Shown here: positions 22,668 to 40,228 of the stretch, piece after piece
How the letters are laid out: each line of letters opens with the position of its first letter
Numbering within the stretch: the stretch's first letter is position 1
NCBI GenBank assembly: GCA_965644315.1
Contig: CBFFRQ010000089.1
Location: 186,001 to 250,000 of the forward strand
Source of the DNA: Caecitellus pseudoparvulus
Lineage: Eukaryota > Protista > Bigyra: Bicosoecida
DNA length: 64,000 nucleotides
Direction: 5' to 3'
Notes under the pieces: model-generated
Told to the model about the DNA's origin: nothing
What the model saw: only the letters and a program-made list of their open reading frames with translations
Databases searched by the model: none
Translations under genes and position numbers: made by a program

Positions 22668-22903
22668 TTCCCAGCGGAGGTGTGACAAGTGCACTGCACC
22701 ACCACGCCGTGGGGGAGGGGTGCCCCGCTACGCACCTGTGCACGCACTCTGACGTGCCAGATCACACCTTCACATGAATTTCATGCCGTGTATTGGATTC
22801 TTCAGCACGGCAGCAGGTGTGGGTCGTTGTGCCTGCTCACAGCAAAAACCTGTGCCAGCCAGTGGTTCTGACCACCCCCATTCACCCCCCCCCCCCCCCA
22901 CCT

Positions 22904-24880
22904 TCATCCTCTCACACGCCCCGCACGCAGCAGCACCATGTCCCGACGATGCCCCCACACACGCCCCCCCGCCCACTCCAGCACCTCCCCACAGTCCACA
23001 AACGCAGGCGGAAACGCACCCGCCACCACCTCCCCATGCCGCCGCCCATGCAAACGCACCAGCGCCAACAGCACCGCAGCGACAGGGCGCGACAAATCAC
23101 GACCCGTCACACTGCCCACTGTGTCCTCATACCGCTGCACAGACTGTGCCAGGCACGGAAAGGCCGTCATGCGCTCCCGCTCGCACTGCTTCAGGTTGCT
23201 GGCCAGGCGTGCGCTCCACACCTGCCGCAGCGCCCACACGACATGCTGCGCACAGAGGGCCCCCCACGTGAGGCCGGGAGGGGGGGGGCGGTACCGCACA
23301 TCACCCCCCTCACGCATGGCACGTGCCACCTCCAGGCCCTGCGCGTACTTGGCCGTGTCCCCCGCCACACCCAGGTCCACCACCCCAGCCTCCGCAGCCT
23401 CAGACACATCCACCAGGTCCCACCGGTGCAGGCAGGACCAAACAGCGGCAGGGACATCCGGCAAGTGTGCGTCACTACCAGGCAGACTGCGCAGACGGGC
23501 ACAGGCCCGCGCAGCCACCTCCCCAGCAGCCAGCAAACGCACCAGGCCGTCCACGCAACGCAGCAGCTGGGGACTGCTGCGCACCAGGCGAGGCACGACC
23601 ATGGGCATGCCCGCGATGTGCTGCGGGGGGATGTGGATGCCGGGAGGCGCAGTGGGCTGCCCCAGCAGCAGCTCCACGCAGCTGCCGCGTAATACGGCGC
23701 CCTCCCCCCGCGGCGGCGACACCGCCGCCTTCCACACCTCCATGCCCCCCAACGTGGCGGGAAACGCCCCCACCAGCATGCCCAGCACACGCACCGCATC
23801 CGCACGCAGCGCAGCCAGCGCCGCGGCCCGCACTGCACCAGGCCGCCGACCAGGCGTCACAGGCGACCACGCCGCCGTCAGCAGCGCCCGTGTCACATGT
23901 GCGGCGTCACCCTCCACGGCGCTCTCCATAGCATCCCGGAACAGCCGCCCGCCCTTGGCCTCCCAGTCCAGCGCCTGCCCCTGCCCTGTGGCGGTCGTGA
24001 ACACCTCCAACGCAGGCAGGTGTCCGTGCAGCGCAGCGAAGCACAGCACGTGTCGGTGACTCACATCGCTGCCCATGGAGAGGCACTTGTGGATGCTCAA
24101 GTGCAGCTGGGCGCACGCACGGAGCAGGAACTCCAAAGCACCTGAATCACCTGTCTCTGCTGCGCGCTGCAGGAGCACCAAGTGCAGCTGAGTGCTGCCA
24201 AACCAGTATGCTCGTGCAGGCGTGTCCAGCACGTGCTCGATGCAGTCAAACGGCTCAAACACTTCGAACAGACGCTCCCTGCCCTGCGCCAGGCGCAGCA
24301 AGGCAAAGATCACCTCTTCACTGCCACTGTCCAGCGCCAACGCAGGCACCTCCACACGCATGGACATGTGCAGGCTGACATCGCACCCGCGCGGAATTTG
24401 ACACGGCAACGCAGTCAACCACGCCAGGGAACGCAGCGCACCCCCCCGCACCGCAGCCTGCAGTCCGTGGTTCACCATGCAGTATGAGGAGAAGGGTGTA
24501 GCTCGCGAGTACCACGCCTCCCACCCTTCTGCTTTTGCGTTCCACCGTGCGTTGTCAAGTACTGCAGCCTGCACCTGCTGCGGCGTTGGTGTCACGTCCG
24601 TGACCAACGCAGCACCTGCTCGTGACAGCAACAGGGCCTGGGCGGCGCGAGGCTGGTCGGCCTCCAACGCAGCGTAGAAGGCCGCCTTCACGGGACAGGC
24701 CTCAGGGATGCAGTAGGGATGATAAATGTTCACGCTGGGGGGTGGAGTGGGAGGTGTGAAGGGTGTCACACTTCGCCACGCCTGTGCCAGAGCGTCCAGG
24801 TCTCCAGCCACTGCTGCGCGAGTCAGTGCAGCCTGCACCTTGTCGTCAGCATGCGTCTCCACATGCTCCGAAGCTGCCAT
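22904..24880 (-). CDS. Degenerate ankyrin-repeat protein with C-terminal WxxRR tail (copy A, 658 aa)
   Basis: ATG at 24880 (MAASEHVE). Ankyrin-like units ALTRAAVAGDLDAL, GLQAAVRGGALRSLAWL, LLQRAAETGDSGALEFLL and VLCFAALHGHLPALEVF. Ends WGHRRDMVLLRAGRVRG*. The ORF is conserved in the paralogue. Confidence 0.8.
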   Translation of the reverse strand: MAASEHVETHADDKVQAALTRAAVAGDLDALAQAWRSVTPFTPPTPPPSVNIYHPYCIPEACPVKAAFYAALEADQPRAAQALLLSRAGAALVTDVTPTPQQVQAAVLDNARWNAKAEGWEAWYSRATPFSSYCMVNHGLQAAVRGGALRSLAWLTALPCQIPRGCDVSLHMSMRVEVPALALDSGSEEVIFALLRLAQGRERLFEVFEPFDCIEHVLDTPARAYWFGSTQLHLVLLQRAAETGDSGALEFLLRACAQLHLSIHKCLSMGSDVSHRHVLCFAALHGHLPALEVFTTATGQGQALDWEAKGGRLFRDAMESAVEGDAAHVTRALLTAAWSPVTPGRRPGAVRAAALAALRADAVRVLGMLVGAFPATLGGMEVWKAAVSPPRGEGAVLRGSCVELLLGQPTAPPGIHIPPQHIAGMPMVVPRLVRSSPQLLRCVDGLVRLLAAGEVAARACARLRSLPGSDAHLPDVPAAVWSCLHRWDLVDVSEAAEAGVVDLGVAGDTAKYAQGLEVARAMREGGDVRYRPPPPGLTWGALCAQHVVWALRQVWSARLASNLKQCERERMTAFPCLAQSVQRYEDTVGSVTGRDLSRPVAAVLLALVRLHGRRHGEVVAGAFPPAFVDCGEVLEWAGGRVWGHRRDMVLLRAGRVRG

Positions 24881-25148
24881 GGTGTGATTGAGGCCCGGGA
24901 GTGCTGCCCTTCGCTCTGGGCAGTGCAAGGCGTGGTGCTGGGGTGCGTTCAATTTCCGCTGCCAAGCGCGGTGCACACGGCGCCCTGCGCTGTCCCAGGC
25001 GGAAGTGCAGTGCTCCGAATGGCACAGACGCTACGTGTACTGCACAACGACTGCGTGAAGTAGTTTGTGCCTTGGATTGTGCTGGTGCAGCAACCTGGCT
25101 TCTCGCGCAACCGCCTTCCCCAAGAGCGCTGCAAGCTCTCCGCGGTCG

Positions 25149-25252
25149 CTACCGCTTGCCACGTTGCTCCTGGCGGCAGCAGAAGACTGCCCGGCGCAGG
25201 ATCCAGTTGCCTGTGCCCAGAATGCGCTGTGCACGATCTGGACTCGTAGACG
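25149..25252 (-). pseudogene. Orphan 3' fragment (about 33 codons plus stop) of the 27527-29410 gene, carried by the duplication
   Basis: Encodes SPDRAQRILGTGNWILRRAVFCCRQEQRGKR*, versus SPDRAQRILGTGNWILRRAAICCRQEQRGKR* at the 3' end of the 27527-29410 gene. Confidence 0.85.
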
Positions 25253-25265
25253 AAGGCCCCCCTTT

Positions 25266-27630
25266 CCCCCCCACCTTCATCCTCTCACACGCCCAGCACG
25301 CAGCAGCACCATGTCCCGACGATGCCCCCACACACGCCCCCCCGCCCACTGCACCACGTCAGCCGAGTCCACAAACGCAGGCGGAAACGCACCCGCCACC
25401 ACCTCCCCATGCCGCCGCCCATGCAAACGCACCAGCGCCAACAGCACCGCAGCGACAGGACGCGACAAATCACGACCCGTCACGCTGCCCACTGTGTCTT
25501 CATACCGCTGCACGGGCTGTGCCAGGCACGGAAAGGCCGTCATGCGCTCCCGCTCGCACTGCTTCAGGTTGCTGGCCAGGCGTGCGCTCCACACCTGCCG
25601 CAGCGCCCACACGACATGCTGGGCACAGAGGGCCCCCCACGTGAGGCCGGGAGGGGGGGGGCGGTACCGCACATCACCCCCCTCACGCATGGCACGTGCC
25701 ATCTCCAGGCCCTGCGCGTACTTGGCCGTGTCCCCCGCCACACCCAGGTCCACCACCCCAGACTCCGCAGCCTCAGACACATCCACCAGATCCCACCGGT
25801 GCAGGCAGGACCAAGCAGCGGCAGGGACATCCGGCAAGTGTGCGTCACTACCAGGCAGACTGCGCAGACGGGCACAGGCCTGCGCAGCCACCTCCCCAGC
25901 AGCCAGCAAACGCACCAGGCCGTCCACGCAACGCAGCAGCTGGGGACTGCTGCGCACCAGGCGAGGCACGACCATGGGCATGCCCGCGATGTGCTGCGGG
26001 GGGATGTGGATGCCGGGAGGCGCAGTGGGCTGCCCCAGCAGCAGCTCCACGCAGCTGCCGCGTAATACGGCGCCCTCCCCCCGCGGCGGCGACACCGCCG
26101 CCTTCCACACCTCCATGTCCCCCAACGTGGCGGGAAACGCCCCCACCAGCATGCCCAGCACACGCACCGCATCCACGCGCAACGCAGCCAGCGCCGCGGC
26201 CCGCACTGCACCAGGCCGCCGACCAGGCGTCACAGGCGACCACGCCGCCGTCAACAACGCCCGTGCCACATGTGCGGCGTCACCCTCCACGGCGCTCTCC
26301 ATAGCATCCCGGAACAGCCGCCCGCCCTTCGCCTCCCAGTCCAGCGCCTGCCCCTGCCCTGTGGCGGTCGTGAACACCTCCAGCGCAGGCAGGTGTCCGT
26401 GCAGCGCGGCGAAGCACAGCACATGTCGGTGACCCACATCGCTGCCCATGGACACGCACTTGTGAATGCTCAAGTGCAGCTCGGCACACGCACGGAGCAG
26501 GAGCTGCACTGCCCACACATTTCCGGTCTCTGCAGCGCGCTGCAGAAACGCCAAGTGCAGCAAGGAGCTGCCTTGCCAGATCGCACGTGCAGGCGTGTCC
26601 AGCACGTGCTCGATGCAGTCAAACGGCTCAAACACTTCGAACAGGCGCTCCTTGCCCTGCGCCAGGCGCAGCAAGGCAAAGATCACCTCTTCACTGCCAC
26701 TCTCCAGCGCCAACGCAGGCACCTCCACACGCATATGCAGCAGCAGGCCGGCAGAGTGTCCACGCGGAATTTGACACGGCAACGCAGTCAACCACGCCAG
26801 GGAACGCAGCGCACCCCCCCGCACCGCCGCCTGCAGTCCGTTGCTGATGACGCAGTACATATTGTACGATCCGTATCGCGCAAGCCACTGTGGCCAACTA
26901 ACTGCTTGTGCGTTCCATCGTGCGTTGTCAAGCACTGCAGCCTGCACCTGCTGCGGCGTTGGCGTCACGTCTGTGACCAATGCGGCACCTGCTCGTGACA
27001 GCAACAGGGCTTGGGCGGCGCGAGGCTGGTCGGCCTCCAGCGCAGCGTAGAAGGCCGCCTTCACGGGACAGGCCTCAGTTGTGCTGTCGGGGTAGTACAC
27101 TTGCTTGTCGGGGGGTGGAGTGGGAGGTGTGAAGGGTGTCACACTTCGCCACGCCTGTGCAAGAGCGTCCAGGTCTCCAGCCACAGCTGCACGAGTCAGT
27201 GCAGCCTGCACCTTGTCGTCAGCATGCGTCTCCACATGCTCCGAAGCTGCCATGGCGTGTTTGAGGCCCGGGAGTGCTGCCCTTCGCTCTGGGCAGTGCA
27301 AGGCGTGGTGCTGGGGTGTGATCAATTTCCGCTGCCAAGCGCGGTGCACACAGCGCCCTGCGCTGTCCTAGGCTGCACTGCAGTGCTCCGAATGGCACAG
27401 ACGCTATGTGTAGGTTACAGTGACAATGTGCAGGTGTTTGTGCCTTGGATTGTGCTGGTGCAGCAACCTGCTTCCGCCTGTCCCGCAAAGACGTTCCCCA
27501 AGCGCGCTGCAAGCTGTCCGCGGTCGTCACCGCTTGCCACGTTGCTCCTGGCGGCAGCAGATGGCTGCCCGGCGCAGGATCCAGTTGCCTGTGCCCAGAA
27601 TGCGCTGTGCACGATCTGGACTCGCAGACG
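25266..27630. repeat. Tandem segmental duplication, unit 2
   Basis: Partner of 22893-25252. Confidence 0.95.
25277..27253 (-). CDS. Degenerate ankyrin-repeat protein with C-terminal WxxRR tail (copy B, 658 aa)
   Basis: Same length as copy A with no indels and the same tail. ATG at 27253. Confidence 0.8.
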   Translation of the reverse strand: MAASEHVETHADDKVQAALTRAAVAGDLDALAQAWRSVTPFTPPTPPPDKQVYYPDSTTEACPVKAAFYAALEADQPRAAQALLLSRAGAALVTDVTPTPQQVQAAVLDNARWNAQAVSWPQWLARYGSYNMYCVISNGLQAAVRGGALRSLAWLTALPCQIPRGHSAGLLLHMRVEVPALALESGSEEVIFALLRLAQGKERLFEVFEPFDCIEHVLDTPARAIWQGSSLLHLAFLQRAAETGNVWAVQLLLRACAELHLSIHKCVSMGSDVGHRHVLCFAALHGHLPALEVFTTATGQGQALDWEAKGGRLFRDAMESAVEGDAAHVARALLTAAWSPVTPGRRPGAVRAAALAALRVDAVRVLGMLVGAFPATLGDMEVWKAAVSPPRGEGAVLRGSCVELLLGQPTAPPGIHIPPQHIAGMPMVVPRLVRSSPQLLRCVDGLVRLLAAGEVAAQACARLRSLPGSDAHLPDVPAAAWSCLHRWDLVDVSEAAESGVVDLGVAGDTAKYAQGLEMARAMREGGDVRYRPPPPGLTWGALCAQHVVWALRQVWSARLASNLKQCERERMTAFPCLAQPVQRYEDTVGSVTGRDLSRPVAAVLLALVRLHGRRHGEVVAGAFPPAFVDSADVVQWAGGRVWGHRRDMVLLRAGRVRG

Positions 27631-29410
27631 GGGCTCCTCGGAAGCACGCTGGGAGTGCTGCGTTTCCATCGCGCAACGCAGCATGGAGCAGCGAGCGCCC
27701 TGCGGGCCAGTGACGCGACAGGGCCAGAGCCACTGAGGCCACCGCCAGCGCATGTATGCGGGGGAGAGAGTGTGTGCTGAGGGCATGGGACAATGCCACC
27801 ACGACGTGAATGGGTTCCAGTTCCCCGACGCGCTGCGCAAAGAGCAAGGATACTGGGGTGGCCCGCTTGGCTGCGAGGGAAGGCAGGTCGCCAAGCAGGT
27901 GGCCCTTTGACAGGATGTCCAGGCCAGGGCGCGGCATGCCCCCCTTTGTACCCCCCTCTGGCTGCAGGGGGGGCATGTCACACGCACTGCCGTCTGCCAG
28001 CGCATGGGCCCACCGCACCGCACCGGGGTGGCCCAAGCGTGCGGCGATGGGCCAACACGCCCGCTCACGGGACGCCAGCACCTCCAGCAGGGCGTGGAAA
28101 CTGCCGGGCAGCTTCGCGGCGTGTGTCACAGTGTGTGGCGCATGCAGCAGCCCAACGTCTGTGTCTGTGAGCAGCGGCGTGGCGGGGTGGCGCAGCAGCG
28201 GCCAGTACGCAGTGTAGTGAGCAGCACGGCCCACCCCGCCAAGCCGAGTGTCCAGCACACCCAAGATGTCGCTGCGAGACGGCATGCAACCGTGCTTGGC
28301 TGCCAGGTCGCACCAGGCCCACAGGCGCCCTCCTGGACATGTGTGCAGCAGGTGCCGCAGGGCTTGGGTTAGTGCTGCGTTGCGGGCGTGATGCGGAATT
28401 TGAGCCAGCACCGCCTCACGGCACTGCGCCACACCCTGCCACTTGGAGGGGCGGGCGAGGAGACACAAAGACAGAACAACTGAGGCATCTTCCCATTCTT
28501 CCGATGTCGCATCTTGGCACAGGGCTGCTGTTCCGTCAATGAGCGTTTGCAGCAGGTGTGTGTCGCGGGCGCGTGCCGCCCAGTACAGTGCAGAGTGGCG
28601 CTGGTTCTGCTTGGGCAGCGCGGAAAAGCAAGGCCACTGGCCCGAGTCACGAGGGCGCACTGCAAAGCCCGCTTCCTTCAACGCAGCACCCCGCTGCAGC
28701 CACTGCTCCACCAGTTCCGTCTTGCCCCCCGCGCTGAGCCAGCACAACACCACACGCCAGGTGTGACTCACGCCCTCCCGCCTCTGCCCCCCATCGCAAC
28801 GCACCAGGGCATCCAACAGCGCCTGGGCAGCTGCAAGGGGGTCTTCGCATGCTTGAGCCCCCCTCCACCCCCTTGGGACGACGGCGTGTGCCAAGTCGCA
28901 GAGGGCGTGCCACGTGGGCCCGCCTGACTCGTGTTCCGGCTGCATCACGGCTGCCAGCGCGCCCAGCTGACACCGGTGGAAACTGAGACACGCCATGGAC
29001 AGCCACGCCTCCTGCCAGGGCGGGAAGCGGGGGGAGGGGTACTTGAAAGGCGAGCGGGGGACAGGTATCGCGCCGACAGCCAGGCAGAACCGTGCCACAC
29101 AGGCCATGACCCGCCAGCGCAGGGAGTCAACCGCAGTGCGCAGGAGGAAGGGAGTTGAGGAAACGCGGGCCGACAGGAGGTGCATGCGTCCCCGCACTTC
29201 CACGCCCTCTGTTGGCAGGTCCGGCGTGCCTCCCAGCGTCGCAACCTCCAGCGCCGCCTTCAGCACTGCACCAGCACTCCAATCCGCCAGCGGTGCTGAG
29301 GCAAGCTCATGCAAGTGCTGCTCTGCTTCTGCCAGCAAGGCTTCATCCGTCACGCTTGGATCGCCAGTGTGTGGTGCGCTTTCCCCCGGTGTGGGCTGCG
29401 CTGCAGCCAT
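27527..29410 (-). CDS. Degenerate ankyrin-like helical-repeat protein with variant WxxRR tail (627 aa)
   Basis: ATG-initiated long ORF. Ankyrin-like units ALYWAARARDTHLLQTLI, WPIAARLGHPGAVRW and CWLSAGGKTELVEQWL. Ends WILRRAAICCRQEQRGKR*. Confidence 0.7.
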   Translation of the reverse strand: MAAAQPTPGESAPHTGDPSVTDEALLAEAEQHLHELASAPLADWSAGAVLKAALEVATLGGTPDLPTEGVEVRGRMHLLSARVSSTPFLLRTAVDSLRWRVMACVARFCLAVGAIPVPRSPFKYPSPRFPPWQEAWLSMACLSFHRCQLGALAAVMQPEHESGGPTWHALCDLAHAVVPRGWRGAQACEDPLAAAQALLDALVRCDGGQRREGVSHTWRVVLCWLSAGGKTELVEQWLQRGAALKEAGFAVRPRDSGQWPCFSALPKQNQRHSALYWAARARDTHLLQTLIDGTAALCQDATSEEWEDASVVLSLCLLARPSKWQGVAQCREAVLAQIPHHARNAALTQALRHLLHTCPGGRLWAWCDLAAKHGCMPSRSDILGVLDTRLGGVGRAAHYTAYWPLLRHPATPLLTDTDVGLLHAPHTVTHAAKLPGSFHALLEVLASRERACWPIAARLGHPGAVRWAHALADGSACDMPPLQPEGGTKGGMPRPGLDILSKGHLLGDLPSLAAKRATPVSLLFAQRVGELEPIHVVVALSHALSTHSLPRIHALAVASVALALSRHWPAGRSLLHAALRDGNAALPACFRGAPSASPDRAQRILGTGNWILRRAAICCRQEQRGKR

Positions 29411-29727
29411 ATCTAAAAATGCCCGCGTTTCAGAGAAGTTTCAACTTGCGACCGCCCACGCCGCGCGGTGCGAGGCAGTTTGAGAGGTGGCAAAGCCGCA
29501 AAAGAGCAGGATATTCAACGTTTAGTCTTAGGCGTGGGATTGAGTTTTGTCAGCTTGCGCCCATGGAGAATTGAACCTTGAGGTGATGTTGAAAACCTCT
29601 CGGCCGCCCACGCAAAACTCCAAACGCGCATGTGTTTGGACTATTTCAAAGCTACGCACTTATCATCACTAGCAGGTGCCTTCTCCCCTCGCTCGCACGC
29701 TCCCTAACTGCAGGCAGGCTGGGCAGC

Positions 29728-30672
29728 ATGGCCAGCGAAAAGTCTGTGAGACCTTTGGCGTGTTGGGCCCTGGAGCAGTCCCTGGAGGACACATGCGGTG
29801 CTTTCGGCCCCATGACGCCTCGCACTCGCCCTGGCGGAGACGCCCGCGCCAAGGAATGGCAGGCGAGCGCCGACACTGCCATGCTGGGCGAGGGCGCTGC
29901 GGAAATCGCTTCTCGTGCCCTGCAGCTTGGCCCCGCCCACGGCCACAAGTACATGGAGGTAGCAGCGCTGCCCATCACTCGTTGCGATTTCACACTATCA
30001 GCATGGGTTCTGCCCTATGCCACTGGGCAGGCCCCTGCCCGCATGTTCCTGCTGTCGGACTGGACGCACTACTGGAGCTACTATCTGGCGTTGCTGCCAA
30101 CACCCGACCCGGGGTACATGAGCGTGAGCCTGCACCTGCGGCGCAACATCAACAGCGCGGGCAGCGACCCTGCTCAAGGCTTGGTGACGGTGGATTCCAC
30201 GAATGACGACCACATCGCCGCGGCCACAGCGGAGTATGGGCCCACCTCCGCTGGCGCCCGCCTGGCCGCTGGCCAGCCCCCCTTCCACGCCACCACCGGG
30301 AGCCTGCCGGCGGTATGGTCGCAGGCGCCGTTGGGCATGGTGCCATGCGGGGCGTGGGCCCATGTCGCGGCGACATGGAGTCGCGAGCGGCGCACCGCCA
30401 CCGTGTGGGTGAACGGCACCCCCGTTGCAGCCTGCCATGCAGAGGTGCCTGAGGAAGATGTGCAGGGTAATACGCACACGGTGCACCACGTGGGGTTGAA
30501 GGCAGATGGCGGGGACTGCCACATTCACGGCTGCCTGCTGGAGCTCACTGTGCACGGGGAGGAGCTGACGCCTGGCCAGCTGCGGAGCGTCATGGGGCGC
30601 CTGCCGGGGCAGGTGGCGTGGCGCCGGCGCCGAGACATGCTGCTGCTGCGGGGGCGCCTGATGCGCAGGTGA
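29728..30672 (+). CDS. LamG/concanavalin A-like (Laminin_G_3-type) domain protein with C-terminal WxxRR tail
   Basis: ATG at 29728. Motifs DFTLSAWV, GAWAHVAATWS, ATVWVNGTPV and IHGCLLELTVHGEELT are typical of LamG-like jelly-rolls. Ends WRRRRDMLLLRGRLMRR*. No signal peptide seen. Confidence 0.8.
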   Translation: MASEKSVRPLACWALEQSLEDTCGAFGPMTPRTRPGGDARAKEWQASADTAMLGEGAAEIASRALQLGPAHGHKYMEVAALPITRCDFTLSAWVLPYATGQAPARMFLLSDWTHYWSYYLALLPTPDPGYMSVSLHLRRNINSAGSDPAQGLVTVDSTNDDHIAAATAEYGPTSAGARLAAGQPPFHATTGSLPAVWSQAPLGMVPCGAWAHVAATWSRERRTATVWVNGTPVAACHAEVPEEDVQGNTHTVHHVGLKADGGDCHIHGCLLELTVHGEELTPGQLRSVMGRLPGQVAWRRRRDMLLLRGRLMRR

Positions 30673-30841
30673 TGTGCCAGGAACAGGGCCGACCTCGAAT
30701 GACCTGTCTGCACGGTGCCTGTTGGACAATGCAGTTTTCACGAAGCTGCTTGCTCCTGCGTTTCACCCAGCTGCCGGGTCAGCTGTCACTCGACAGAGCA
30801 CAGGGACCATCCAGAGGCAGCTGCCCAGGAGCAGCGGACCT

Positions 30842-32590
30842 TCAGCCGCGAAGTACGTGTCGGAGCAGCAGCATGCGTCGGCGAGTCAGCCATGCGGTTT
30901 GCGCACACACTGCACCTGTGCGGGCAGCGGCTGTTGAGCCATGCGGCTGGGCTGGTCCCACCAGGGCCCGAGGCAAGGGTGCAGTGCCAGCTGGAACAAG
31001 GTTCGCCACCGTTGTTCCGTGTTCTGAGTGACAGCCCCAGGTGCAGTGCAGCAGCCGCAGCAGGACACCTGTCGCGGGTCCGTACAGGGCGGGGGGCGGA
31101 CCACCCCCCTGACGCGCAGGCATGCTGCTGCAAGTCACAGCGGCACAAATGTCAGCTGCGTTCAGCTCGCGAAGTGTGTCGGGGGAGCGGCCGTCGGCTG
31201 CCTTCCACGTGGTGAAGGGGTTCCACCCCCGTGGCGGTGCAGTGAGCGGCGAAGGGAAGGCGATTCCCGCCTGAGCCAGCCAGGCACGCGCAGGGGGGAA
31301 GAGAGCTGCCACCATGACGATCAGATTCCTCGCGCCGTGGATGTGGAAACGCCGCCCAGGTTCAGTGTGCACTGGCAGGGGCAGGTCCAGAGCCAGCTCG
31401 GCAGGCAGGAAGGGCAGTGCCGCAGACCAATTGCCACGCCGCGCCACGCTGCTGTTCGGGCGCAAGCACGCTCTCTGCACAATGCGAGGTACAGACTCTG
31501 ACACATATACTGCTCCCTTGTGTGTCTGCAAGGCCTCCAGAAAGTCCGCCATCTGAGCGTGGGAGGTGTTGTAAAGCAGCCGCCGAAACGCAGCGGCGAG
31601 CTCGACGGCTGCAACCTCTGGCTCCCCCCCCTCGCACAGCCGGGCAATGAATAACCGCACCAACCGCTTTGATTGAGCAGGAAAGCTGCTCCTGCTCTCT
31701 GCTGCCAGCTGCATGCACTTTGCTGGCCTGTGGTGCTTGCTTGTCGTGCCGGGTAGCGCAAAAACCGCTTGCACCATGCTCACGTCGGCGATCATCACGG
31801 CACGCTCCAAGAGGTGCAGCGCACCCGTTGCTCCCTGCTGCACTGGACAGTACAGCATTCGATGCACACGCTCTTCACCCAGAGCGGCTTCTGCTTCGCG
31901 CATGAACGCAATCACAGCTGGCGTGCGTCGCGTCTCCACCAACGCGTGCAGCGCAGCAGCCCACCGACTGGGCGCCTGCAGCACTGTGCCAGCGTGGCGA
32001 TCCGATACGACCGTACTCGCCACCTCCACCATGGCCTGCACCAGCACCTCAGTGCTCTGCCTCGCCATGGCCCACGGCAGTCGCCGCACCAGCGCGGCGT
32101 GACTGTGCACTGGCGTTGGCTTGCCCAAGGGCGCGTCCACGCACAAACGCACCAAGGACAAGTCACCCGTGCGACCTGCGGCACATGCCACGTAGTGCAG
32201 GGCTCGCAGTATCTCTCGCTCGCACTGGATGACTGGCTGCATCGCCGCGCGTGGGCGGCACGCTGCATCGCGCCCCGCCTTCCACAGGGCAAGGCCCGCC
32301 TCAGTCACATTGGCCCGCGGGCTGTGCATGAGGAGCAAGCTGATCCAAGGTGCCAGGTCCCGGAGCTTGGGCGGGGCGCCCGACGGCACTGGGATGCCGT
32401 CTGGCAGTGCGCCAGCGTCGAGCAGGCGTGGGATGCTCTGGTGCCAGCGGTCACCTTGAAAGTCACGCCAAGCCGCACTGGCCATGTCGTGGAGGCAGCG
32501 CTTGTCCTTTGCATTCAACTTGATCTCCTCTAAAACTCCACCATCTGCCTGCGCCGTGGTGGCGGCGCTGGCGACCTTGGTGGCCGCCAT
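30842..32590 (-). CDS. Degenerate ankyrin-like protein with C-terminal WxxRR tail (582 aa)
   Basis: ATG at 32590 (MAATKVASAA). Units ACAAGRTGDLSLVRLCV and LLERAVMIADVSMVQAVF. Ends WLTRRRMLLLRHVLRG*. Confidence 0.7.
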   Translation of the reverse strand: MAATKVASAATTAQADGGVLEEIKLNAKDKRCLHDMASAAWRDFQGDRWHQSIPRLLDAGALPDGIPVPSGAPPKLRDLAPWISLLLMHSPRANVTEAGLALWKAGRDAACRPRAAMQPVIQCEREILRALHYVACAAGRTGDLSLVRLCVDAPLGKPTPVHSHAALVRRLPWAMARQSTEVLVQAMVEVASTVVSDRHAGTVLQAPSRWAAALHALVETRRTPAVIAFMREAEAALGEERVHRMLYCPVQQGATGALHLLERAVMIADVSMVQAVFALPGTTSKHHRPAKCMQLAAESRSSFPAQSKRLVRLFIARLCEGGEPEVAAVELAAAFRRLLYNTSHAQMADFLEALQTHKGAVYVSESVPRIVQRACLRPNSSVARRGNWSAALPFLPAELALDLPLPVHTEPGRRFHIHGARNLIVMVAALFPPARAWLAQAGIAFPSPLTAPPRGWNPFTTWKAADGRSPDTLRELNAADICAAVTCSSMPARQGGGPPPALYGPATGVLLRLLHCTWGCHSEHGTTVANLVPAGTAPLPRALVGPAQPHGSTAAARTGAVCAQTAWLTRRRMLLLRHVLRG

Positions 32591-32793
32591 GCTGCTCTTC
32601 TGCGGTAATCGCTTTCCCCGCAACACGCCGACTGCTCGCGCTCGAGTGTTGGGACGTCTTGAGCCCTAAGTGGCAACTTCAAGGTAAAATCATACTCCAA
32701 TGTTTAAATTTGTCGGCTACTCTGCGCGTTACAGTGCCTGGGGGCACAGTTGCTGCCCCTGTACGCGAGCCAGGCCAGCCAAAATGTGCACTA

Positions 32794-35607
32794 TTATTGC
32801 TTCCCCATTGCCGCCCGCAGCAGCACCACTTTGCGGCGCAGGCGCCAGGTGGCACCCCGTAGCCTCTGTCTCCCTCCTGGTAGCCGCATGCTGGGCGTGT
32901 CACACAGGACGCGGTCCCTCAGAAACGCCACCAAGGGGTGCGACGTCGGCAAGCGGCCTGCGCAACGCACCAGCGCCAACAGCGCCGCCTGCCCCTGACA
33001 GTAAAAGTTGGAGGTCCTGTAAAATGCCCAGGCCTTCCATGCCACACGGCAGCATTCCTCTGCACCGCCTGCCGTGTGCGGGCTCAAGTGCATGCCGTCG
33101 CCCGCCGCCGACCCGTTCGCCACCCCTTGCAGGAGGGTAAAACTGCTATCCCCCAGCGGCACCATGTCCCCCGCCCCACCCATGTGAGCCATCAGGCCCT
33201 GCACCCACGCGTCTGCGCTCAGGAAGTCCAGGCTCTTCAATGGCCCCAGAAGGAACCCCAGGGACAACATGCTCAACGCGCCAGACTGCTGCACGGTTCG
33301 CAGCACGTTCCCGATGAGAGCGCAAGGAAACGCCGGGAAGGGGGGCGGCCGTGTCGCCAGCCAAGCGCTCATGCACGTACTGCGCAAGCTGTCTGCCCTG
33401 CTCTGCAAGTTCCCGTCACCTGCGACGCCGCCCCCGCCAAACGAGTCGCTCACGTCCTCCATCGACGGTCGCAAGGTCGCGGCGCGACGAGCCAGGTCAC
33501 CGCCCTCTTCTTCGGCCATGGCCAGCTCCTCGAACAGCACACGCAGTGCAGGCAGCACATATGGGGCATTGCCGGTCAAGCCCCCCACCAGGGCCCTCCA
33601 AAGAGTCCGGGAAGGGGTGGCCAGGTGGTCGGTCTGCAGCGTTTCACAACGCAGCAAGCAACGCAGCACCTCCCGACGAGCAGCCAAGGACGCGGCTGGA
33701 CGAGCCAGAGTGGCGTTTATCAAGGCTTGCAGGGCAGTTTCCGCGGCCGTTCTCGCGGCGGTGGCGCTGGCTGCGGCCTGCTGTGCCTCAGCGGCGAGCA
33801 GGACACGGACGGTGGTGGCATGACCCCCCCACGCAGCCCAGACAAGGGGGGGTACTGCGGGCTCCGGCATGCCGGGTGTGCACGGCACTGTGATCCACCT
33901 GGAAGCCGCGCCAGAGGGCGCACAGGCCATGGCTGTGAGGGCGTCGGCGTTGCCGGTCGCAGCTGCCGACGCGACCGCCGCGCCTGCGGCGAGGTGCGCA
34001 TACCGACTCAACATGCGATTCTGGCGGCCAAAGTGCCCCAGACACATCGCCTGCAGTGCCTGGAATCTAGCCACGGGCTGCTCCCAGCTCTGGGGGAAGG
34101 CGGTCGCCCAGCGACGTGCTGGCTTCGCCCCCGCCGCTCGCCCCAGCGCCGTCCACTGCCCCTCGCCATCGAACAGCCAGCGCAGGTGCCAGGCACCACG
34201 TGGCGAGGCCATTGCTGATAGCACACCCCACTGGCCCCGGCGCAAGGCGGCTTCTAGCATGTGCCGCAGGGGTTTGGCCAGTTTGCGCCGTACCGTGTGG
34301 GAGATGGTGGTGGCCAGCTCCATGAGAAACGCTGCAACGTCGGCGAAACCGCCGTGCAGCGCAGGCTTCAATAGCGCCTGCAGCACAGTTGCCAGCTGCG
34401 CACCAGGTGCAGGCAGCAGCTGCAACGTCACGTCCCTCTGGAAGAAAGGCTGGGCCAAGCACGCACGCAGACAGCGTGGGTCCAGAAAGGCTGGGGGGAG
34501 GGGTTTCTCCAGCAAGAGCGCGGCAAATGCCTCGGCCGACGGGGGACTGGCCCCCCACTCCGGCGGCACAAAGCAGTCGGGCCGTCGCTTGGCGGCTCTC
34601 TGCAGCAAGGCAGCGCCTCTGCGGCGGTCCCAGTTGGCCTGGTGGTGTGCGCGGCGGAACAACGTCAGCCGTGGACCGGCCGGCGGCAATTCCAGCCCAG
34701 CCGCCAACCACTCGCACACCAGGCGCTGCAGGGGGCGCCAGTGGTGCAGTCCGCCCCGCAGCAAGGCGTCGGACACGTGCATGCTGAGTGGCTCCACACC
34801 CAGCTCCATGCTCACCGCCGTGGACAGCCACTTGAACGCGTACCCACTGGCGTGCTCCTCGGCCAGCAGCGAAACGCACGAGGAGCCCAGCAGGCCCAGA
34901 CACAGCAGGCTGCCGTGCACGGGAGGGCAGTTGTACATGGGTTCCAGTACCATGCCTGCTGCGTTGGCCTTGGGCACGGAGATGAGGGCTGGGGCCATGC
35001 TGACATGGGGGCGCCGCAGCATGGCTTGCCGCGCAGCCTCCAACCCCTCGTCCACCCGCCCACGCTGTGTGCAGACGCCCACCAGGTCCAGCATGCGGTG
35101 GCCAAAGGCGGTGTTGACGTTCCATCGCCACAGCGTCTCGGACAGGCACTCCATGATGGGGAGGAAGTTGACGGGGCGGTCCGCTTCCAGGGCGCTGCGC
35201 AGCGCCCAGCACAAGGAGTCACCGAAGTCTTCCTCTGGAAACGCACCAGGGGGCAGGTGGCGCATGAGCAGCACAATGCCCTCTACGCTGGCCTGGGAGA
35301 GTGCACGGAATGCTTCCCTCCAAAAGGTCTGGCTGCCGCCCGGGTACTTGCCGCTCGCCCAAGTGGCCAGTGGCACGCTGCCCAGCAGAGCAGGCAGCGC
35401 AGTTGGGCACCGGTCCAAAGCAGTCAGCAGCAGCGGCAGCACGAGGCGGGCGTGAAAGGCAGTGTCTTGTGTGGCATCCGCGACACCCTGCACGTCGGCT
35501 CTCTCGACAAGGGTGGCGAGGTGAACCGCCTCCGCCGCATCCGCTGCGGAAATTGCTTGGCGTGGTGGACACGCCGCCTTCGTTCCTGCCTCGCCCACGC
35601 CAGCCAT
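32794..35607 (-). CDS. Degenerate ankyrin-like protein (937 aa) with internal and C-terminal WxxRR motifs
   Basis: Units PPLVWAAWGGHATTVRVLL, AVASAAATGNADAL and LKPALHGGFADVAAFL. Internal NWDRRRGAALLQR; terminal WRLRRKVVLLRAAMGKQ*. Confidence 0.75.
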   Translation of the reverse strand: MAGVGEAGTKAACPPRQAISAADAAEAVHLATLVERADVQGVADATQDTAFHARLVLPLLLTALDRCPTALPALLGSVPLATWASGKYPGGSQTFWREAFRALSQASVEGIVLLMRHLPPGAFPEEDFGDSLCWALRSALEADRPVNFLPIMECLSETLWRWNVNTAFGHRMLDLVGVCTQRGRVDEGLEAARQAMLRRPHVSMAPALISVPKANAAGMVLEPMYNCPPVHGSLLCLGLLGSSCVSLLAEEHASGYAFKWLSTAVSMELGVEPLSMHVSDALLRGGLHHWRPLQRLVCEWLAAGLELPPAGPRLTLFRRAHHQANWDRRRGAALLQRAAKRRPDCFVPPEWGASPPSAEAFAALLLEKPLPPAFLDPRCLRACLAQPFFQRDVTLQLLPAPGAQLATVLQALLKPALHGGFADVAAFLMELATTISHTVRRKLAKPLRHMLEAALRRGQWGVLSAMASPRGAWHLRWLFDGEGQWTALGRAAGAKPARRWATAFPQSWEQPVARFQALQAMCLGHFGRQNRMLSRYAHLAAGAAVASAAATGNADALTAMACAPSGAASRWITVPCTPGMPEPAVPPLVWAAWGGHATTVRVLLAAEAQQAAASATAARTAAETALQALINATLARPAASLAARREVLRCLLRCETLQTDHLATPSRTLWRALVGGLTGNAPYVLPALRVLFEELAMAEEEGGDLARRAATLRPSMEDVSDSFGGGGVAGDGNLQSRADSLRSTCMSAWLATRPPPFPAFPCALIGNVLRTVQQSGALSMLSLGFLLGPLKSLDFLSADAWVQGLMAHMGGAGDMVPLGDSSFTLLQGVANGSAAGDGMHLSPHTAGGAEECCRVAWKAWAFYRTSNFYCQGQAALLALVRCAGRLPTSHPLVAFLRDRVLCDTPSMRLPGGRQRLRGATWRLRRKVVLLRAAMGKQ

Positions 35608-35877
35608 GGCGGACAGAGCAGTTGAAGCACAGCACCTTCTAGTGCAAATATATAGGACACAGTGTTCGAGTCGCTGTAATGTAAATTCCCGCAGCTACTG
35701 CCATTCCAGCCAAGCTGCGCATGCCCGTCAACCAGGCCCACACTTGCCAGTGACCACATAGTCACTTTGCAGCGCCCACGGACGCACAAGATGAACATCA
35801 AGACACGCATTACTGTGATTCTCTGCAGGCTGGCGCAGTGCTACAGTCCTGCGGCAGCATGCAGCCCTCGCCTGGCC

Positions 35878-37797
35878 TCATTTGTGGGGCGCCTCCCCAC
35901 CCTCCTCAGCTGCGCCGCCACCCCCGGCAGCGGCTTGCCTAGCAGCTTGGTCCACCTGCCACTGAGTCAGCACTGCCACGACGTCCTGGTGGCCGCCCCG
36001 CTCCGCCCACTGGAGCAGCGTGGCGGGTTCACGACACGCATCCGAGGGCCGGCCGACCAGGTTCAAGTACGCCTGCAGCGCTTGGCACCCGTCCCTGCAC
36101 ACCGCCTCAAACAATGCCACGTGCCCTGTCGCCGCGGCAGCGCTCATCGCGTCACCCATGTGGCAGTCCGTCAGTCCCTGCCGGTCAAATTCATGACGCT
36201 GCCAAAGCTTCGCCTGCAGAGTGCGCACGGCGTGCAGCCTGCTGAGTGCACTGGCATGGGTTTTGTGGCAGACAGCGCCGGCGTTGGGCCGTGACGCCGC
36301 TGCGCGCAGCAGGCAGCGCCACTGCAGGGGCTGCAGCAGCTTCCGCAAAAAGCTGCGCCCTCGGCAGTTCACAGTCGCGGCCAGCATGGTCAGACTGCCC
36401 CGTAACAGAGATGCAGTCAACATGGGCAGCAGCGCTTTGCCCAGGAGCTTGCTGCACGCTGTTGAGTGTGCCTGGGCAGCGTCCACGATGGCAGCGGAAG
36501 TTGCTGCGTTGCCCGCACGCAGTGTCACTCGCAGCAGGCTTGCCGAGCGGTGGGCCAGGAAGCCAGCTTCAAACGGCGGACAGCACCACCCGAGTGCCTC
36601 TGAAAACCCTTCTTGTGCAAAGCACTCGGCCAGGAAGGCGTTGCTTCGCAGCTCAGCGGGGGGCGGGTTGGCCCGCAGCAACGTGCGAAACGCCGGCGCA
36701 GCCAGCGGAGCACGAGGGGGCCCCTGCGCAGGCGCACTGCCACACGGAGAGCTGCGCGAGCGGGCCCTGAAACGCAGCATGCGCTCACGCCTCTCCCAAT
36801 TCACCTGGCCCTGCGCCCGCTGCACGAGGAGGTATCGCAGCAGCTGGCGGTGCTCTGCTGCGTCGCTTCGCTGCAGCACGCCAGGCAGGGCGGTCGCCAG
36901 GCGCTGCAGGGGGGGGCAGTGGTGCAGGCCGCCTTTGAGTATGGCGCGTTGCAGGAGGAGGTCAGTCGGTAGCGTGTACATCTCCATGGAGCAGGAAGCT
37001 TGCAAGGCATATGGCAACTGCGGCAGAACCTGCTCCAGCTCCAGCTCGCGCACACTGCCCAGCACGGCAAGGGCGGCGACGGGGGATACTGGAAAGGTGC
37101 CCCTCTCACGGTCCCTTCGTGCAACTGAACCCACCCCTATCCGGCGCTTTACTGCTTTCTGGGCGCTGGCGATGCACTCCCTGCGGCTGACCTGATCGGT
37201 GAAGCCTCCTGCAATCATTTCCGCAACCATGCTGGCGCGTCCCACGGAAAGCATGTACTCCAACAACATACGGAACGCATGATAACTTTCCTCGAATGGT
37301 CCCCATCTCCCCGCAGCTCGCTTCATGACGCCAAGTGCCGGCGCCAGGTCACACGTGGCAAACCTCAGCTTGCTTGTGGAGCCAAAGCGCATGCTTTGCA
37401 GCATGTCCTCTCCCTTGTCCAACACCTCCGTGGGCAGGTGCAGCATGATGTAAGGGAGGGCTTCCGCCGCTCGCCCTTGGCCCTTTTGGAACAGCAGCCT
37501 CCAGAACTCCTCCGCAGACAGGTGGTAATTCGTGCGCGTGGCCCAGTCTTCCGGCGTGTTGGCTCGCAGCAGTGCCTGCACCAGCGGCAGCCCGTACGGC
37601 AAGGCCTCGGACAGGTGAGCCAGCAGGACACTGGGGGTGAAGGAGAACTTGCCCAGCATCTTCATGGCCCGGGTTGTTTTCCCCGCAAGGATGGCTTCGC
37701 GCAGTGCCTTGTCCACCACAGTCGCCTGGCAAGAAACGTCCTCGTGCCAGGCATAGTTTCCGTGCAGTGTGGGGTGCATGTCGCTGCAGCGATGCAT
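35878..37797 (-). CDS. Shorter paralogue of the 937-aa ankyrin-like protein; start codon uncertain
   Basis: Colinear blocks: ILKGGLHHCPPLQRL versus LLRGGLHHWRPLQRL, EEFWRLLF versus QTFWREAF, AMSAAAATGHVAL versus AVASAAATGNADAL, LLQWAERGGH versus LVWAAWGGH. Internal NWERRERMLRFR. Confidence 0.7.
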   Translation of the reverse strand: MHRCSDMHPTLHGNYAWHEDVSCQATVVDKALREAILAGKTTRAMKMLGKFSFTPSVLLAHLSEALPYGLPLVQALLRANTPEDWATRTNYHLSAEEFWRLLFQKGQGRAAEALPYIMLHLPTEVLDKGEDMLQSMRFGSTSKLRFATCDLAPALGVMKRAAGRWGPFEESYHAFRMLLEYMLSVGRASMVAEMIAGGFTDQVSRRECIASAQKAVKRRIGVGSVARRDRERGTFPVSPVAALAVLGSVRELELEQVLPQLPYALQASCSMEMYTLPTDLLLQRAILKGGLHHCPPLQRLATALPGVLQRSDAAEHRQLLRYLLVQRAQGQVNWERRERMLRFRARSRSSPCGSAPAQGPPRAPLAAPAFRTLLRANPPPAELRSNAFLAECFAQEGFSEALGWCCPPFEAGFLAHRSASLLRVTLRAGNAATSAAIVDAAQAHSTACSKLLGKALLPMLTASLLRGSLTMLAATVNCRGRSFLRKLLQPLQWRCLLRAAASRPNAGAVCHKTHASALSRLHAVRTLQAKLWQRHEFDRQGLTDCHMGDAMSAAAATGHVALFEAVCRDGCQALQAYLNLVGRPSDACREPATLLQWAERGGHQDVVAVLTQWQVDQAARQAAAGGGGAAEEGGEAPHK

Positions 37798-37871
37798 TGG
37801 GCACCGGACACACACACAGCCCTCGCTCAGGTGACGCGCTCCACTCGAGGAAGGAATTTGCCAGAGCGCTG

Positions 37872-39458
37872 TCAGTGGCTCGCCTGCACCCAGGAGGCGG
37901 TGGGGGTTGCTGCCTGCGTCCAGCTGCCCTTGGGCGCAGCAGCCCTGCCGCCGACGCCGCTGTCGGCGCCGAGAGAGGTCGACGCCGAGGGCATGTCGAA
38001 GAAGCTGAGGGAGTGCGGTTCGTCGTCGCTGGAGCTCTCCGTGATGTCTGACAGGCTGCCGCTGTCATCCCCCCAAGCGCCACCACCGCCCCCTGCGCCC
38101 GCCATGCTGGGGACAGACGCCCACACGGCGGCGAGGACGGCGCGGGAGGTGGCGCCACCGCCGCTGGGTGACTCCGGCAGACCAGTACGGACGGGTGTGT
38201 GCCCTGCCCCGCCCCCCTTGGCCGCGCCATGGGTGGCGAAGGCGGCTGGCAAGGCAGCCTCCATGCGTGCGAGGCTGGGGGCGGCGGGGCGGGGGGGAGT
38301 GCCTGTGGAGGCCAGTGACTCGCCGCCACCGCTGCTGGCCATGCTCGTGGAACGGCCTCGCGACCTTCCGGGCAGTGGCGCCAGCACCGCCCCCCCCCTG
38401 CGCTGTGCACTGCGCTCGCTGTGCACGCTGGCCAGCCCCTCCGAGCTCAGCGCAGAGGCGGAGCTGGAGCCGTGCAGGGCAGCGGAAGCGGCGTGCGAGG
38501 GGGGGTGTTGTTGAGGGGGGTGGGCGTGGCTTTCTTCCCGCGCCACGGCCCAGGGCATGACGAGCCCCTCGCCCTTGGCTGTGCCGGGCAGCGCGTGCAC
38601 TGCGGAAATGTGTGACGCGTCCGACACGCTGCGAATCTCACGAGGCGGCGAGGCGGCGCGGCGGCGAGGGGGAGGGGCGCCCTCCAGCGCAGACTGAATG
38701 GCACGTGCTGTTGCCTTCTGGTGGGACTTGAAGTGGGGCGGCGGGTGGAAGGGCCCTTGCAGCGCGTACTGCAGGGGCGTGCGCCCACCCGCCGTGGCAC
38801 GTGGGTCTGCGCCGCGCTGCAGCAACAGCTCTGCGCCGTCCGCCACACCGCCCCGCGCGAGGATGTGCAGGGCTGTGGGCGCGTCATGGCTGCCGTCTGT
38901 CGCATTCACGTCTGCCCCTGCGTCCAGCAGCACGCGCAGCATGTCCAGCGCAGCCTCCGTGCGGTCTGGGCCGATGCCCCGCAACTTCCACTCCAGCGCG
39001 ACGCAGGCATGCCACGCCATGCAGGTGAGGGGCGTCGCAGGGGCGTTGGGATTCTTGTACACGCCGTGCACATCTGCGCCTGCTTCGATCAGCTCCGTCA
39101 GAATGGCGGCTGAGCCCGTGTGCCGGCACGCTGCCATGAGAGGGGGCATGGGCCCACGCCCGTCAGCGCCGCCTTTGTCCAGGGCATGCACGTCCGCGCC
39201 CTTCACCAGCAGCTGTGAGACGACTTTGGACCACTCGTACCCGCCAACCCAGCGGTGCAGGGGCGTGCGGCCGTCCCCAACGGCGCCGTTCACCGCTGCG
39301 CCGTGGGCAATGAGTGCCAACGCTGCTTCAGGTGCAGGGCACAGTACCAGGAACTTGGGGCTGTCCAAGTTGACCCCCGTGCCGCACAGGCGGTTCACGG
39401 CCGCCACATCGTTGCGTTGGATGGCTGACTTCAAGGCTGTGCTGCAGCAGGCCCCCAT
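37872..39458 (-). CDS. Canonical ankyrin-repeat protein with predicted N-myristoylation/palmitoylation and disordered C-terminus
   Basis: ATG at 39458 gives MGACCS. Repeats GRTPLHRW, LLVKGADVHA, LLDAGADVNA, PTALHILA and GRTPLQYA. Confidence 0.85.
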   Translation of the reverse strand: MGACCSTALKSAIQRNDVAAVNRLCGTGVNLDSPKFLVLCPAPEAALALIAHGAAVNGAVGDGRTPLHRWVGGYEWSKVVSQLLVKGADVHALDKGGADGRGPMPPLMAACRHTGSAAILTELIEAGADVHGVYKNPNAPATPLTCMAWHACVALEWKLRGIGPDRTEAALDMLRVLLDAGADVNATDGSHDAPTALHILARGGVADGAELLLQRGADPRATAGGRTPLQYALQGPFHPPPHFKSHQKATARAIQSALEGAPPPRRRAASPPREIRSVSDASHISAVHALPGTAKGEGLVMPWAVAREESHAHPPQQHPPSHAASAALHGSSSASALSSEGLASVHSERSAQRRGGAVLAPLPGRSRGRSTSMASSGGGESLASTGTPPRPAAPSLARMEAALPAAFATHGAAKGGGAGHTPVRTGLPESPSGGGATSRAVLAAVWASVPSMAGAGGGGGAWGDDSGSLSDITESSSDDEPHSLSFFDMPSASTSLGADSGVGGRAAAPKGSWTQAATPTASWVQASH

Positions 39459-40228
39459 GGTGGCTGCAGGGCGCTGTCGTCGGATGGTATGCCGCTGCCA
39501 CGCTGGCAAGCAAGCGCTAGCAGATCTCCGGGTCTGCGCACACGCTCCAGGCGTTGGCGCGGTGCTCGAGCTGCGCAAGTAGGGACAGGGAGCAGATTGA
39601 AAGGCGGTGAAGATGGTTGAGAGCGCGCAGCGGCCCCCACACCGCCCGGGCATGATGGAACGGCGATCGAGCCCTGAGCGCTCATCCGAAGCACTGCCTG
39701 CACGCCCAACGCTGTGCGCAGCGACGTGGGTGAGAGAGAGGATTCACGTACGGTTTAAAGTGTCTCAGAAGGCCCAAGATGGCATGTGGTGTCGCCAGCG
39801 GTGGGGAGGTTTTCGTTTAGCCGGCGGGCGCGGCTTGCGCTGGGCTGAGCCGCTTTGCCGAGCAGCTGGCAGCGTCGGCGTGCCCACCCTTGAAGGTGCC
39901 AGAGCTCGCGCAGCGACGCCAAAGCCAAGCAAGGGGGCATGGTGAACCCGAGCAGGACAGTGAAGTTCCCCGGGGCGGCTCAGCCCGCCAGCGCTGGGCG
40001 CCAGGCTGCTCGCTCGCAGACGGAGTAGCTTGAGGCGCGGTTCGGTTGGGCAGCTGTGACGCCAGCTGCCCTTCCCGCGCTAGCAAACGATGCTTAGCGG
40101 CATGGAAACGGGGGCAAAGCATGCATGCGAGTCTGGACCACACTGGCCTTCCGTAGCACACGCGTTTCACCCGCTTGAGCGGGCGCTGGGGCAGCCTTTG
40201 CGCTGGAAGGGTGCGATGTCGTGTGCAA

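Follow-up and report, generated by a model that had tools for sequence, protein, structure and literature searches.

Proteins in which variable ankyrin repeats are joined to a short constant C-terminal box form large paralogous families in several lineages, such as the poxviral ANK/PRANC and ANK/BC proteins and the metazoan ASB proteins. In the poxviral ANK proteins the boxes are truncated forms that sequence searches detect with difficulty (PMC6232478). Large ankyrin families are also found in marine picophytoplankton; for example, Bathycoccus carries a 149-copy ankyrin-repeat family (PMC3491373). The present analysis concerns a C-terminal tail motif, W-x2-RR followed by a hydrophobic run and Arg, that ends six genes in a 64,000-nucleotide stretch of DNA from the bicosoecid protist Caecitellus pseudoparvulus (contig C89:186001-250000 of an assembly of 30.6 Mb in 215 contigs; this whole stretch is referred to as the window). 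The tail belongs to a large paralogous family that, like the poxviral and metazoan proteins, combines variable ankyrin repeats with a short constant C-terminal box, whereas the tail itself is without F-box or BC-box similarity and has its own conserved Trp, RR, four hydrophobic residues, and Arg. As in the picophytoplankton families, the genes are lineage-specific, tandem, unevenly distributed, without an assigned function, and carried by a small marine eukaryote; however, no conserved C-terminal motif is described for those families in PMC3491373 or PMC11409870, and 1.84 billion proteins searched with the tail profile contain the tail in close relatives of the present organism only.

In the six-frame translation of the 64-kb window, the pattern W..RR.[MVA][VLIA][LC][LC]R, which had been proposed in an earlier note on this DNA, is matched exactly six times, and all six matches form the ends of open reading frames (ORFs) of 342–949 codons, 5–7 residues ahead of the stop. 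The motif coordinates were checked by translation, and the terminal tails claimed for six genes were found in the places given, together with the internal copy, WERRERMLRFR, that had been noted in a seventh gene; the accompanying claim was that no housekeeping gene of the window ends in this way, and none of its remaining long ORFs has such a tail end. Enrichment at C-termini against shuffled controls had been set beforehand as a test; in the window, six matches out of six are terminal, and 200 order-2 Markov simulations of it give none. The window is gene-dense, with a guanine-cytosine (GC) content of 59–74%, and a chance or composition artefact as the source of the motif is ruled out by the same simulations. 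Moreover, the codon choice at the conserved Arg and Leu positions varies between the window genes, so that conservation of the motif acts at the protein level; a DNA-level repeat as the cause of tail conservation is ruled out by these codon differences. The genes in question and their context are as follows.

22904..24976, reverse strand: tailed gene 1, an ORF of 690 residues, all-alpha with a weak ankyrin-like signal; WGHRRDMVLLR at 22925-22957
25277..27349, reverse strand: tailed gene 2, which duplicates gene 1 in tandem with 90% identity; motif at 25298-25330
25149..25244, reverse strand: orphan tail cassette; WILRRAVFCCR at 25173-25205, stop at 25149-25151
27527..29410, reverse strand: tailed gene 3, 627 residues, with a weak Ank_3 match; WILRRAAICCR at 27551-27583
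29632..30672, forward strand: tailed LamG/ConA-like gene, probable start ATG at 29728; WRRRRDMLLLR at 30619-30651
30842..32626, reverse strand: tailed gene 5, probable start ATG at 32590, all-alpha body with no assigned fold; WLTRRRMLLLR at 30860-30892
32794..35607, reverse strand: tailed gene 6, 937 residues; terminal WRLRRKVVLLR at 32815-32847 and internal degenerate WDRRRGAALLQ at 34600-34632
35878..37815, reverse strand: paralogue of gene 6 with no terminal tail, only the degenerate internal WERRERMLRFR at 36766-36798
37872..39653, reverse strand: context, canonical ankyrin-repeat gene without a tail
10137..22694, reverse strand: context, intronless ORF of 4185 residues ending in a HECT domain (E value 6.5e-42)

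Gene 6 and its paralogue at 35878-37815 share 28% identity over about 550 residues (E value 1e-23), and their internal motif copies occupy homologous positions. Both internal copies are degenerate, the final Arg having become Gln in gene 6 and RR having become RE in the paralogue, and the decay of both fits a need of the motif for a free C-terminal position. The orphan cassette, which lies just downstream of gene 2, consists of 31 codons and its own stop with no gene body, and closely copies the 3' end of gene 3, with AVFCC in place of AAICC.

Beyond the window, a 30-position profile built from the window tails and iterated once was searched against the whole genome, where it gave at least 150 matches (scored among 178 candidates, and a lower bound) spread over dozens of contigs; the tail is genome-wide and not confined to the cluster first described. 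Tail position and form were surveyed in 57 distinct tails defined by regular expression, 51 of which lie within 30 residues of a stop; in 38 of these 51, 4–7 residues follow the final Arg, and in 11 the motif is followed by an extension of 8–30 residues. The six exceptions comprise the two internal window copies, one tail lying 50 residues from the end of its frame, and three false positives of the regular expression. Two forms of the tail prevail: a W-x2-RR form with 16 tails, including those of all window genes, and a W-x8-RR form that is the commonest, with 36 tails, and represents the canonical subfamily. Canonical members end in QPAKDAVWxGTSTRxGRRxMVLLRA plus about four residues, and this tail is joined directly to the last of the 38-residue ankyrin-type repeats that make up their bodies and match Pfam Ank families above threshold. 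They are arranged in tandem arrays, often on small contigs that are broken inside the arrays, and no signal peptide is present in 12 full-length canonical members. Taken across its forms, the box is a Trp anchor, a spacer of 2, 8, or about 25 residues, and RR-x-(M/V/A)(V/L)(L)(L/H)-R-A, followed by approximately five residues; it is the C-terminal signature of a large, fast-evolving, mostly ankyrin gene family in a marine protist lineage.

The bodies that carry this box in the window had been described as divergent recognition folds, a description that stands for one gene and not for the rest. The LamG fold reported among the tailed genes is demonstrably different from the others, being recognised by Pfam as Laminin_G_3 at 43 bits against a cut-off of 27.6 (E value 6.8e-11), and the gene is present as a single copy in the genome. 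The other bodies are all-alpha with weak ankyrin-like signals: gene 1 matches the canonical repeats weakly (hhalign E value 0.039 over 93 columns), gene 3 has a sub-threshold Pfam match to Ank_3 (E value 0.06), and genes 3 and 5 show neither an hhalign match to the canonical repeats nor detectable similarity to each other. For gene 5, the neighbours found by a protein language model are mostly ankyrin clusters with low recognition, and an AlphaFold model built from two sequences is all-helical with a mean predicted local distance difference test (pLDDT) score of 38, which makes it uninformative beyond the all-alpha class. The window bodies are best read as one LamG domain together with several very diverged ankyrin-like solenoids.

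Some features of individual window genes may be recorded here. The LamG gene and gene 5 are convergent and lie tail to tail, and their sole DNA similarity is a 23-nucleotide inverted match restricted to the motif, in which the tail codons form an inverted repeat (30628-30650 / 30861-30883, 87% complementary). Gene 3 has ICC where the other tails have LLL (27551-27583), and the usual CTGCTG reads TGCTGC, like a one-base register shift. Genes 1 and 2 differ at 67 of 690 residues, and the differences fall in patches (residues 80-90, 147-169, 197-204, 256-282, and 661-666) in which the proportion of synonymous differences (pS) is raised too, at 0.22 versus 0.05. For the gene pair, the ratio of nonsynonymous to synonymous proportions (pN/pS) is about 0.55. 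The patchy pattern resembles mosaic gene conversion, with third copies as donors, more than point-wise positive selection.

Relatives outside the genome were sought with the tail profile among 1.84 billion representative proteins, which yielded 15 matches at E values up to 0.001, all located at C-termini: 14 come from near-identical relatives in marine metagenome assemblies, and the remaining one, a bacterial protein, is a false positive. The tail model is short, and distant tails would escape this search. In 11 orthologue pairs with a close marine-metagenome relative, 117 of 118 motif residues are identical as compared with 95.2% of the bodies (Fisher p 0.045), in agreement with the earlier claim of a constant tail on a variable body. 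A 4.7-kb ENA metagenome contig from a close relative (94–95% protein identity) likewise carries genes 6 and 5 next to each other, with the same stops and with both motifs of gene 6, terminal and internal, retained. Searching with a full-length canonical member retrieves 121 ankyrin proteins from ENA, JGI, and NCBI assemblies, many of which end in a related module consisting of DAVWxGVxVP, about 20 variable residues, and ALxRxGRRxxVLHRA; the carriers of this module lie on contigs with ordinary cellular genes (kinesin, Ufd2/U-box, and anoctamin). Over the GRRxMVL[L/H]RA core, the profiles of own and foreign tails match each other (hhalign 81%, E value 1.2e-5), and foreign tails within a set of 530 ORFs reach E values of 8.8e-8 to 1.6e-3 with the profile of the window's genome. 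The presence of a related box in other marine protists indicates that the box is older than the species and that the distance from Trp to RR is elastic.

Two of the matches to the canonical member carry the UniProt label "viral metagenome", and the same DNA is found in IMG/VR as GVMAG-S-1103017-74, a bin labelled as a giant virus. An IMG/VR scan with the canonical tail gave no match, and a scan with the repeat alignment gave this bin only, with repeats 42–54% identical to the canonical ones. All six ankyrin-type genes inspected in the bin end in looser W-x2-RR-x-V tails, for instance the W-x2-RR-like LHWRRRRTLLLKR and LVWRARRVVCAARR, and the body of one of these genes has no relative in the window's genome. 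The GC content of the bin, 65–69%, is host-like, and mis-binning is a possible alternative to a viral origin.

Pfam scans of two tail sets (21 and 19 tails, E values up to 10) returned isolated noise only, and PDB profile searches with two tail alignments returned nothing significant; the earlier view that the tail is not a named domain is upheld by both. Neither Pfam nor the PDB nor the literature found describes the box, while the combination of a repeat domain with a short C-terminal box is of a known kind. Among short linear patterns, the D-box pattern occurs in 2 of 60 tails, and a loose mitogen-activated protein kinase (MAPK) D-motif pattern occurs in 55 of 60, a count that is near-circular with the definition of the motif itself. 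MAPK docking motifs include the D-motif, or kinase interaction motif (KIM), and, in MAPK-activated kinases, the C-terminal LxxRR docking motifs. They share with the tail a hydrophobic residue that two spacer positions separate from RR, then a short spacer and hydrophobic-x-hydrophobic, and they sometimes lie near the C-terminus; however, the conserved Trp and final Arg-Ala of the tail are not D-motif features, and the pattern is loose enough to be a lead only. Calmodulin-binding segments of the 1-10 and 1-14 types resemble the tail in their bulky Trp anchor, their net positive charge, and the presence of a hydrophobic anchor after 9 or 13 residues, but the four consecutive hydrophobic residues of the tail are not amphipathic, and the IQ pattern [FILV]Q-x3-[RK]G-x3-[RK] is found in none of 60 own and none of 19 foreign tails.

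When the last 200 residues of canonical members were modelled by AlphaFold from a 31-sequence alignment, the repeats reached pLDDT values above 90 and the conserved tail 47–55, the tail being drawn as helix-break-helix and undocked from the solenoid. In such a model, a segment that is conserved and yet of low confidence and undocked is typical of a partner-dependent element.

On this evidence, the tail may quite possibly be a partner-dependent docking box, a reading that is favoured tentatively; its architecture, copy number, terminal position, and constraint and the lack of a named domain are shown, whereas that the box binds at all is something we infer. The tail would then be a short, conditionally folded docking element that tethers a repeat domain, itself variable and target-binding, to a single shared partner in the cell, by which many different targets could be brought to the same machine; a ubiquitin-ligase scaffold, a MAPK docking groove, and calmodulin are candidate partners. 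Alternatively, the tail could be a family signature by descent: in one ankyrin family it would cap or solubilise the C-terminal end and be kept for stabilising the last repeat rather than for binding a partner, and the divergent window genes would be very diverged members of that family. Ankyrin repeats, or at least weak ankyrin-like signals, occur in nearly all carriers, the canonical tail comes directly after the last repeat, and the narrow spacing to the stop, mostly 4–7 residues, is as at the end of a fold; nevertheless, a structural cap appears unlikely, given that AlphaFold leaves the tail unpacked on the solenoid despite its strong conservation, that a LamG domain bears it too, and that a Trp-to-RR distance of 2, 8, or about 25 residues is hard to square with fixed packing. 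Docking is favoured over such a cap because the box is short and invariant, its position is strictly terminal, its internal copies have decayed, an unrelated fold carries it, its spacing is elastic, and its pLDDT is low despite conservation. Similarly, the bodies have diverged beyond detectable similarity while the box persists with different codons, and its occurrence on the single-copy LamG protein is the only clear transfer to another fold. Several points weigh against a docking box or against its extension to viruses. Low pLDDT is weak evidence for docking; the box could be merely the slowest-evolving part of one family, most carriers being of ankyrin ancestry; and, owing to the 95% overall identity of the relatives, the constraint test yields only a marginal p of 0.045. 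In the bin labelled as a giant virus, the tails do not match the tail profiles significantly (E values 0.05–0.3), and the stretches examined contain only ORFans and ankyrin genes with repeats of the same 38-residue type, with no viral hallmark genes.

A basic-hydrophobic tail might also act as a sorting signal that sends the proteins to a single compartment, for example the nucleus, the nucleolus, or the surface of a membrane or an organelle, and Arg-rich clusters (RRGRR) do adjoin the hydrophobic patch at a terminal position in proteins without an N-terminal signal peptide; but an invariant Trp together with an exact hydrophobic run goes beyond the specificity of known basic targeting signals, and a hydrophobic stretch of transmembrane length is lacking, which leaves a sorting role quite unlikely. 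The earlier note had inferred a docking helix for a shared partner such as a ubiquitin-ligase scaffold; in its specific version, the tail would be a substrate-receptor box for a cullin-type or HECT ubiquitin ligase, by analogy with SOCS/BC-box, F-box, and PRANC motifs. The design parallels ANK-SOCS, ANK-PRANC, and ANK/BC, whose truncated viral boxes formerly escaped sequence detection (PMC6232478); a six-frame search of the genome finds no more than 8 F-box-like matches, compared with at least 150 tails; and a possible giant-virus copy of the family would suit hijacking. The likeness itself failed when checked, however, as the tail profile aligns with a profile of the genome's own 8 segments of the F-box, a domain of roughly 45 residues (LPxE...W), at an hhalign probability of 0.15%, and the patterns for these boxes and IQ occur in 0–3 of 60 tails: the poxviral F-box core in none of the 60, and the BC-box pattern [TSP]-L-x3-[CSA]-x3-hydrophobic, a helix that a Cul box accompanies in the SOCS box, in its strict form in 2 of 60 own tails and in 1 of 19 foreign ones and in its relaxed form in 3 of 60 and 4 of 19, respectively, with no Pfam match to SOCS_box or F-box and, as noted, no other match in Pfam or the PDB. 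The HECT neighbour amounts to adjacency only, which means little since the family is dispersed over dozens of contigs, and a ubiquitin-ligase box of this kind is distinctly improbable. Recognition of the extreme C-terminus as a C-degron, conferring protein instability, had also been put forward, and the last residue is Arg or Gly in 21 of 51 tails (Arg in 14, Gly in 7, Ala in 7, and nine other residues in the rest); yet twelve different end residues occur with none conserved, 11 of the 51 tails are extended by 8–30 residues, and the conserved part lies 4–7 residues inside rather than at the terminus, so that a C-degron is disfavoured and highly improbable. Returning to the docking box, its most far-reaching form would be a new adaptor-box class that, in a marine picoeukaryote lineage, couples a hypervariable repertoire of more than 150 ankyrin genes to one conserved machine, for instance a ubiquitin ligase or a kinase, with giant viruses of these hosts having captured the family in order to hijack that machine; this joint proposal, which would be an independent invention of the ANK-PRANC and ANK-SOCS logic, is speculative and has a small chance of being right.

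With regard to genes for candidate partners in this genome, the six-frame search also gave a single Skp1_POZ match, which is a partial exon in an open frame of 79 residues, and introns split the gene for calmodulin as well as that of the Skp1/Elongin C type. Eight F-box-like matches and one partial Skp1_POZ exon are few for a 30-Mb eukaryote, and intron-split genes are under-detected in such a search. In the neighbouring HECT ORF (10137-22694, reverse strand), no domain was recognised in the first 833 residues.

Large ankyrin expansions have been repeatedly reported from the genomes of marine phytoplankton with their function unassigned, and a conserved box provides an experimental handle on them. 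For instance, one tail peptide could serve as bait for the partner shared by more than 150 proteins and thereby reveal the role of the family. If the giant-virus copies are genuine, the box would mark a point of host–virus conflict in an ecologically abundant organism. The tail could also be defined cleanly as a new domain or motif in databases where these C-termini now lack annotation.

As to transcription, the window DNA is present in DNA runs and in many marine metagenomes. Two runs filed as metatranscriptomic, and flagged as probably DNA, contain contigs that fall within genes 3, 5, and 6 and the LamG gene with 90–99% identity; these contigs weakly support expression of the four genes, and none of them reaches a tail, so they are silent on the 3' ends. 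Elsewhere in the assembly, contig C213 has a bacterial-type small-subunit ribosomal RNA match that may derive from an organelle or a contaminant, and contig C81:462535-506238 holds a tandem ribosomal DNA array with 18S copies about 8.45 kb apart.

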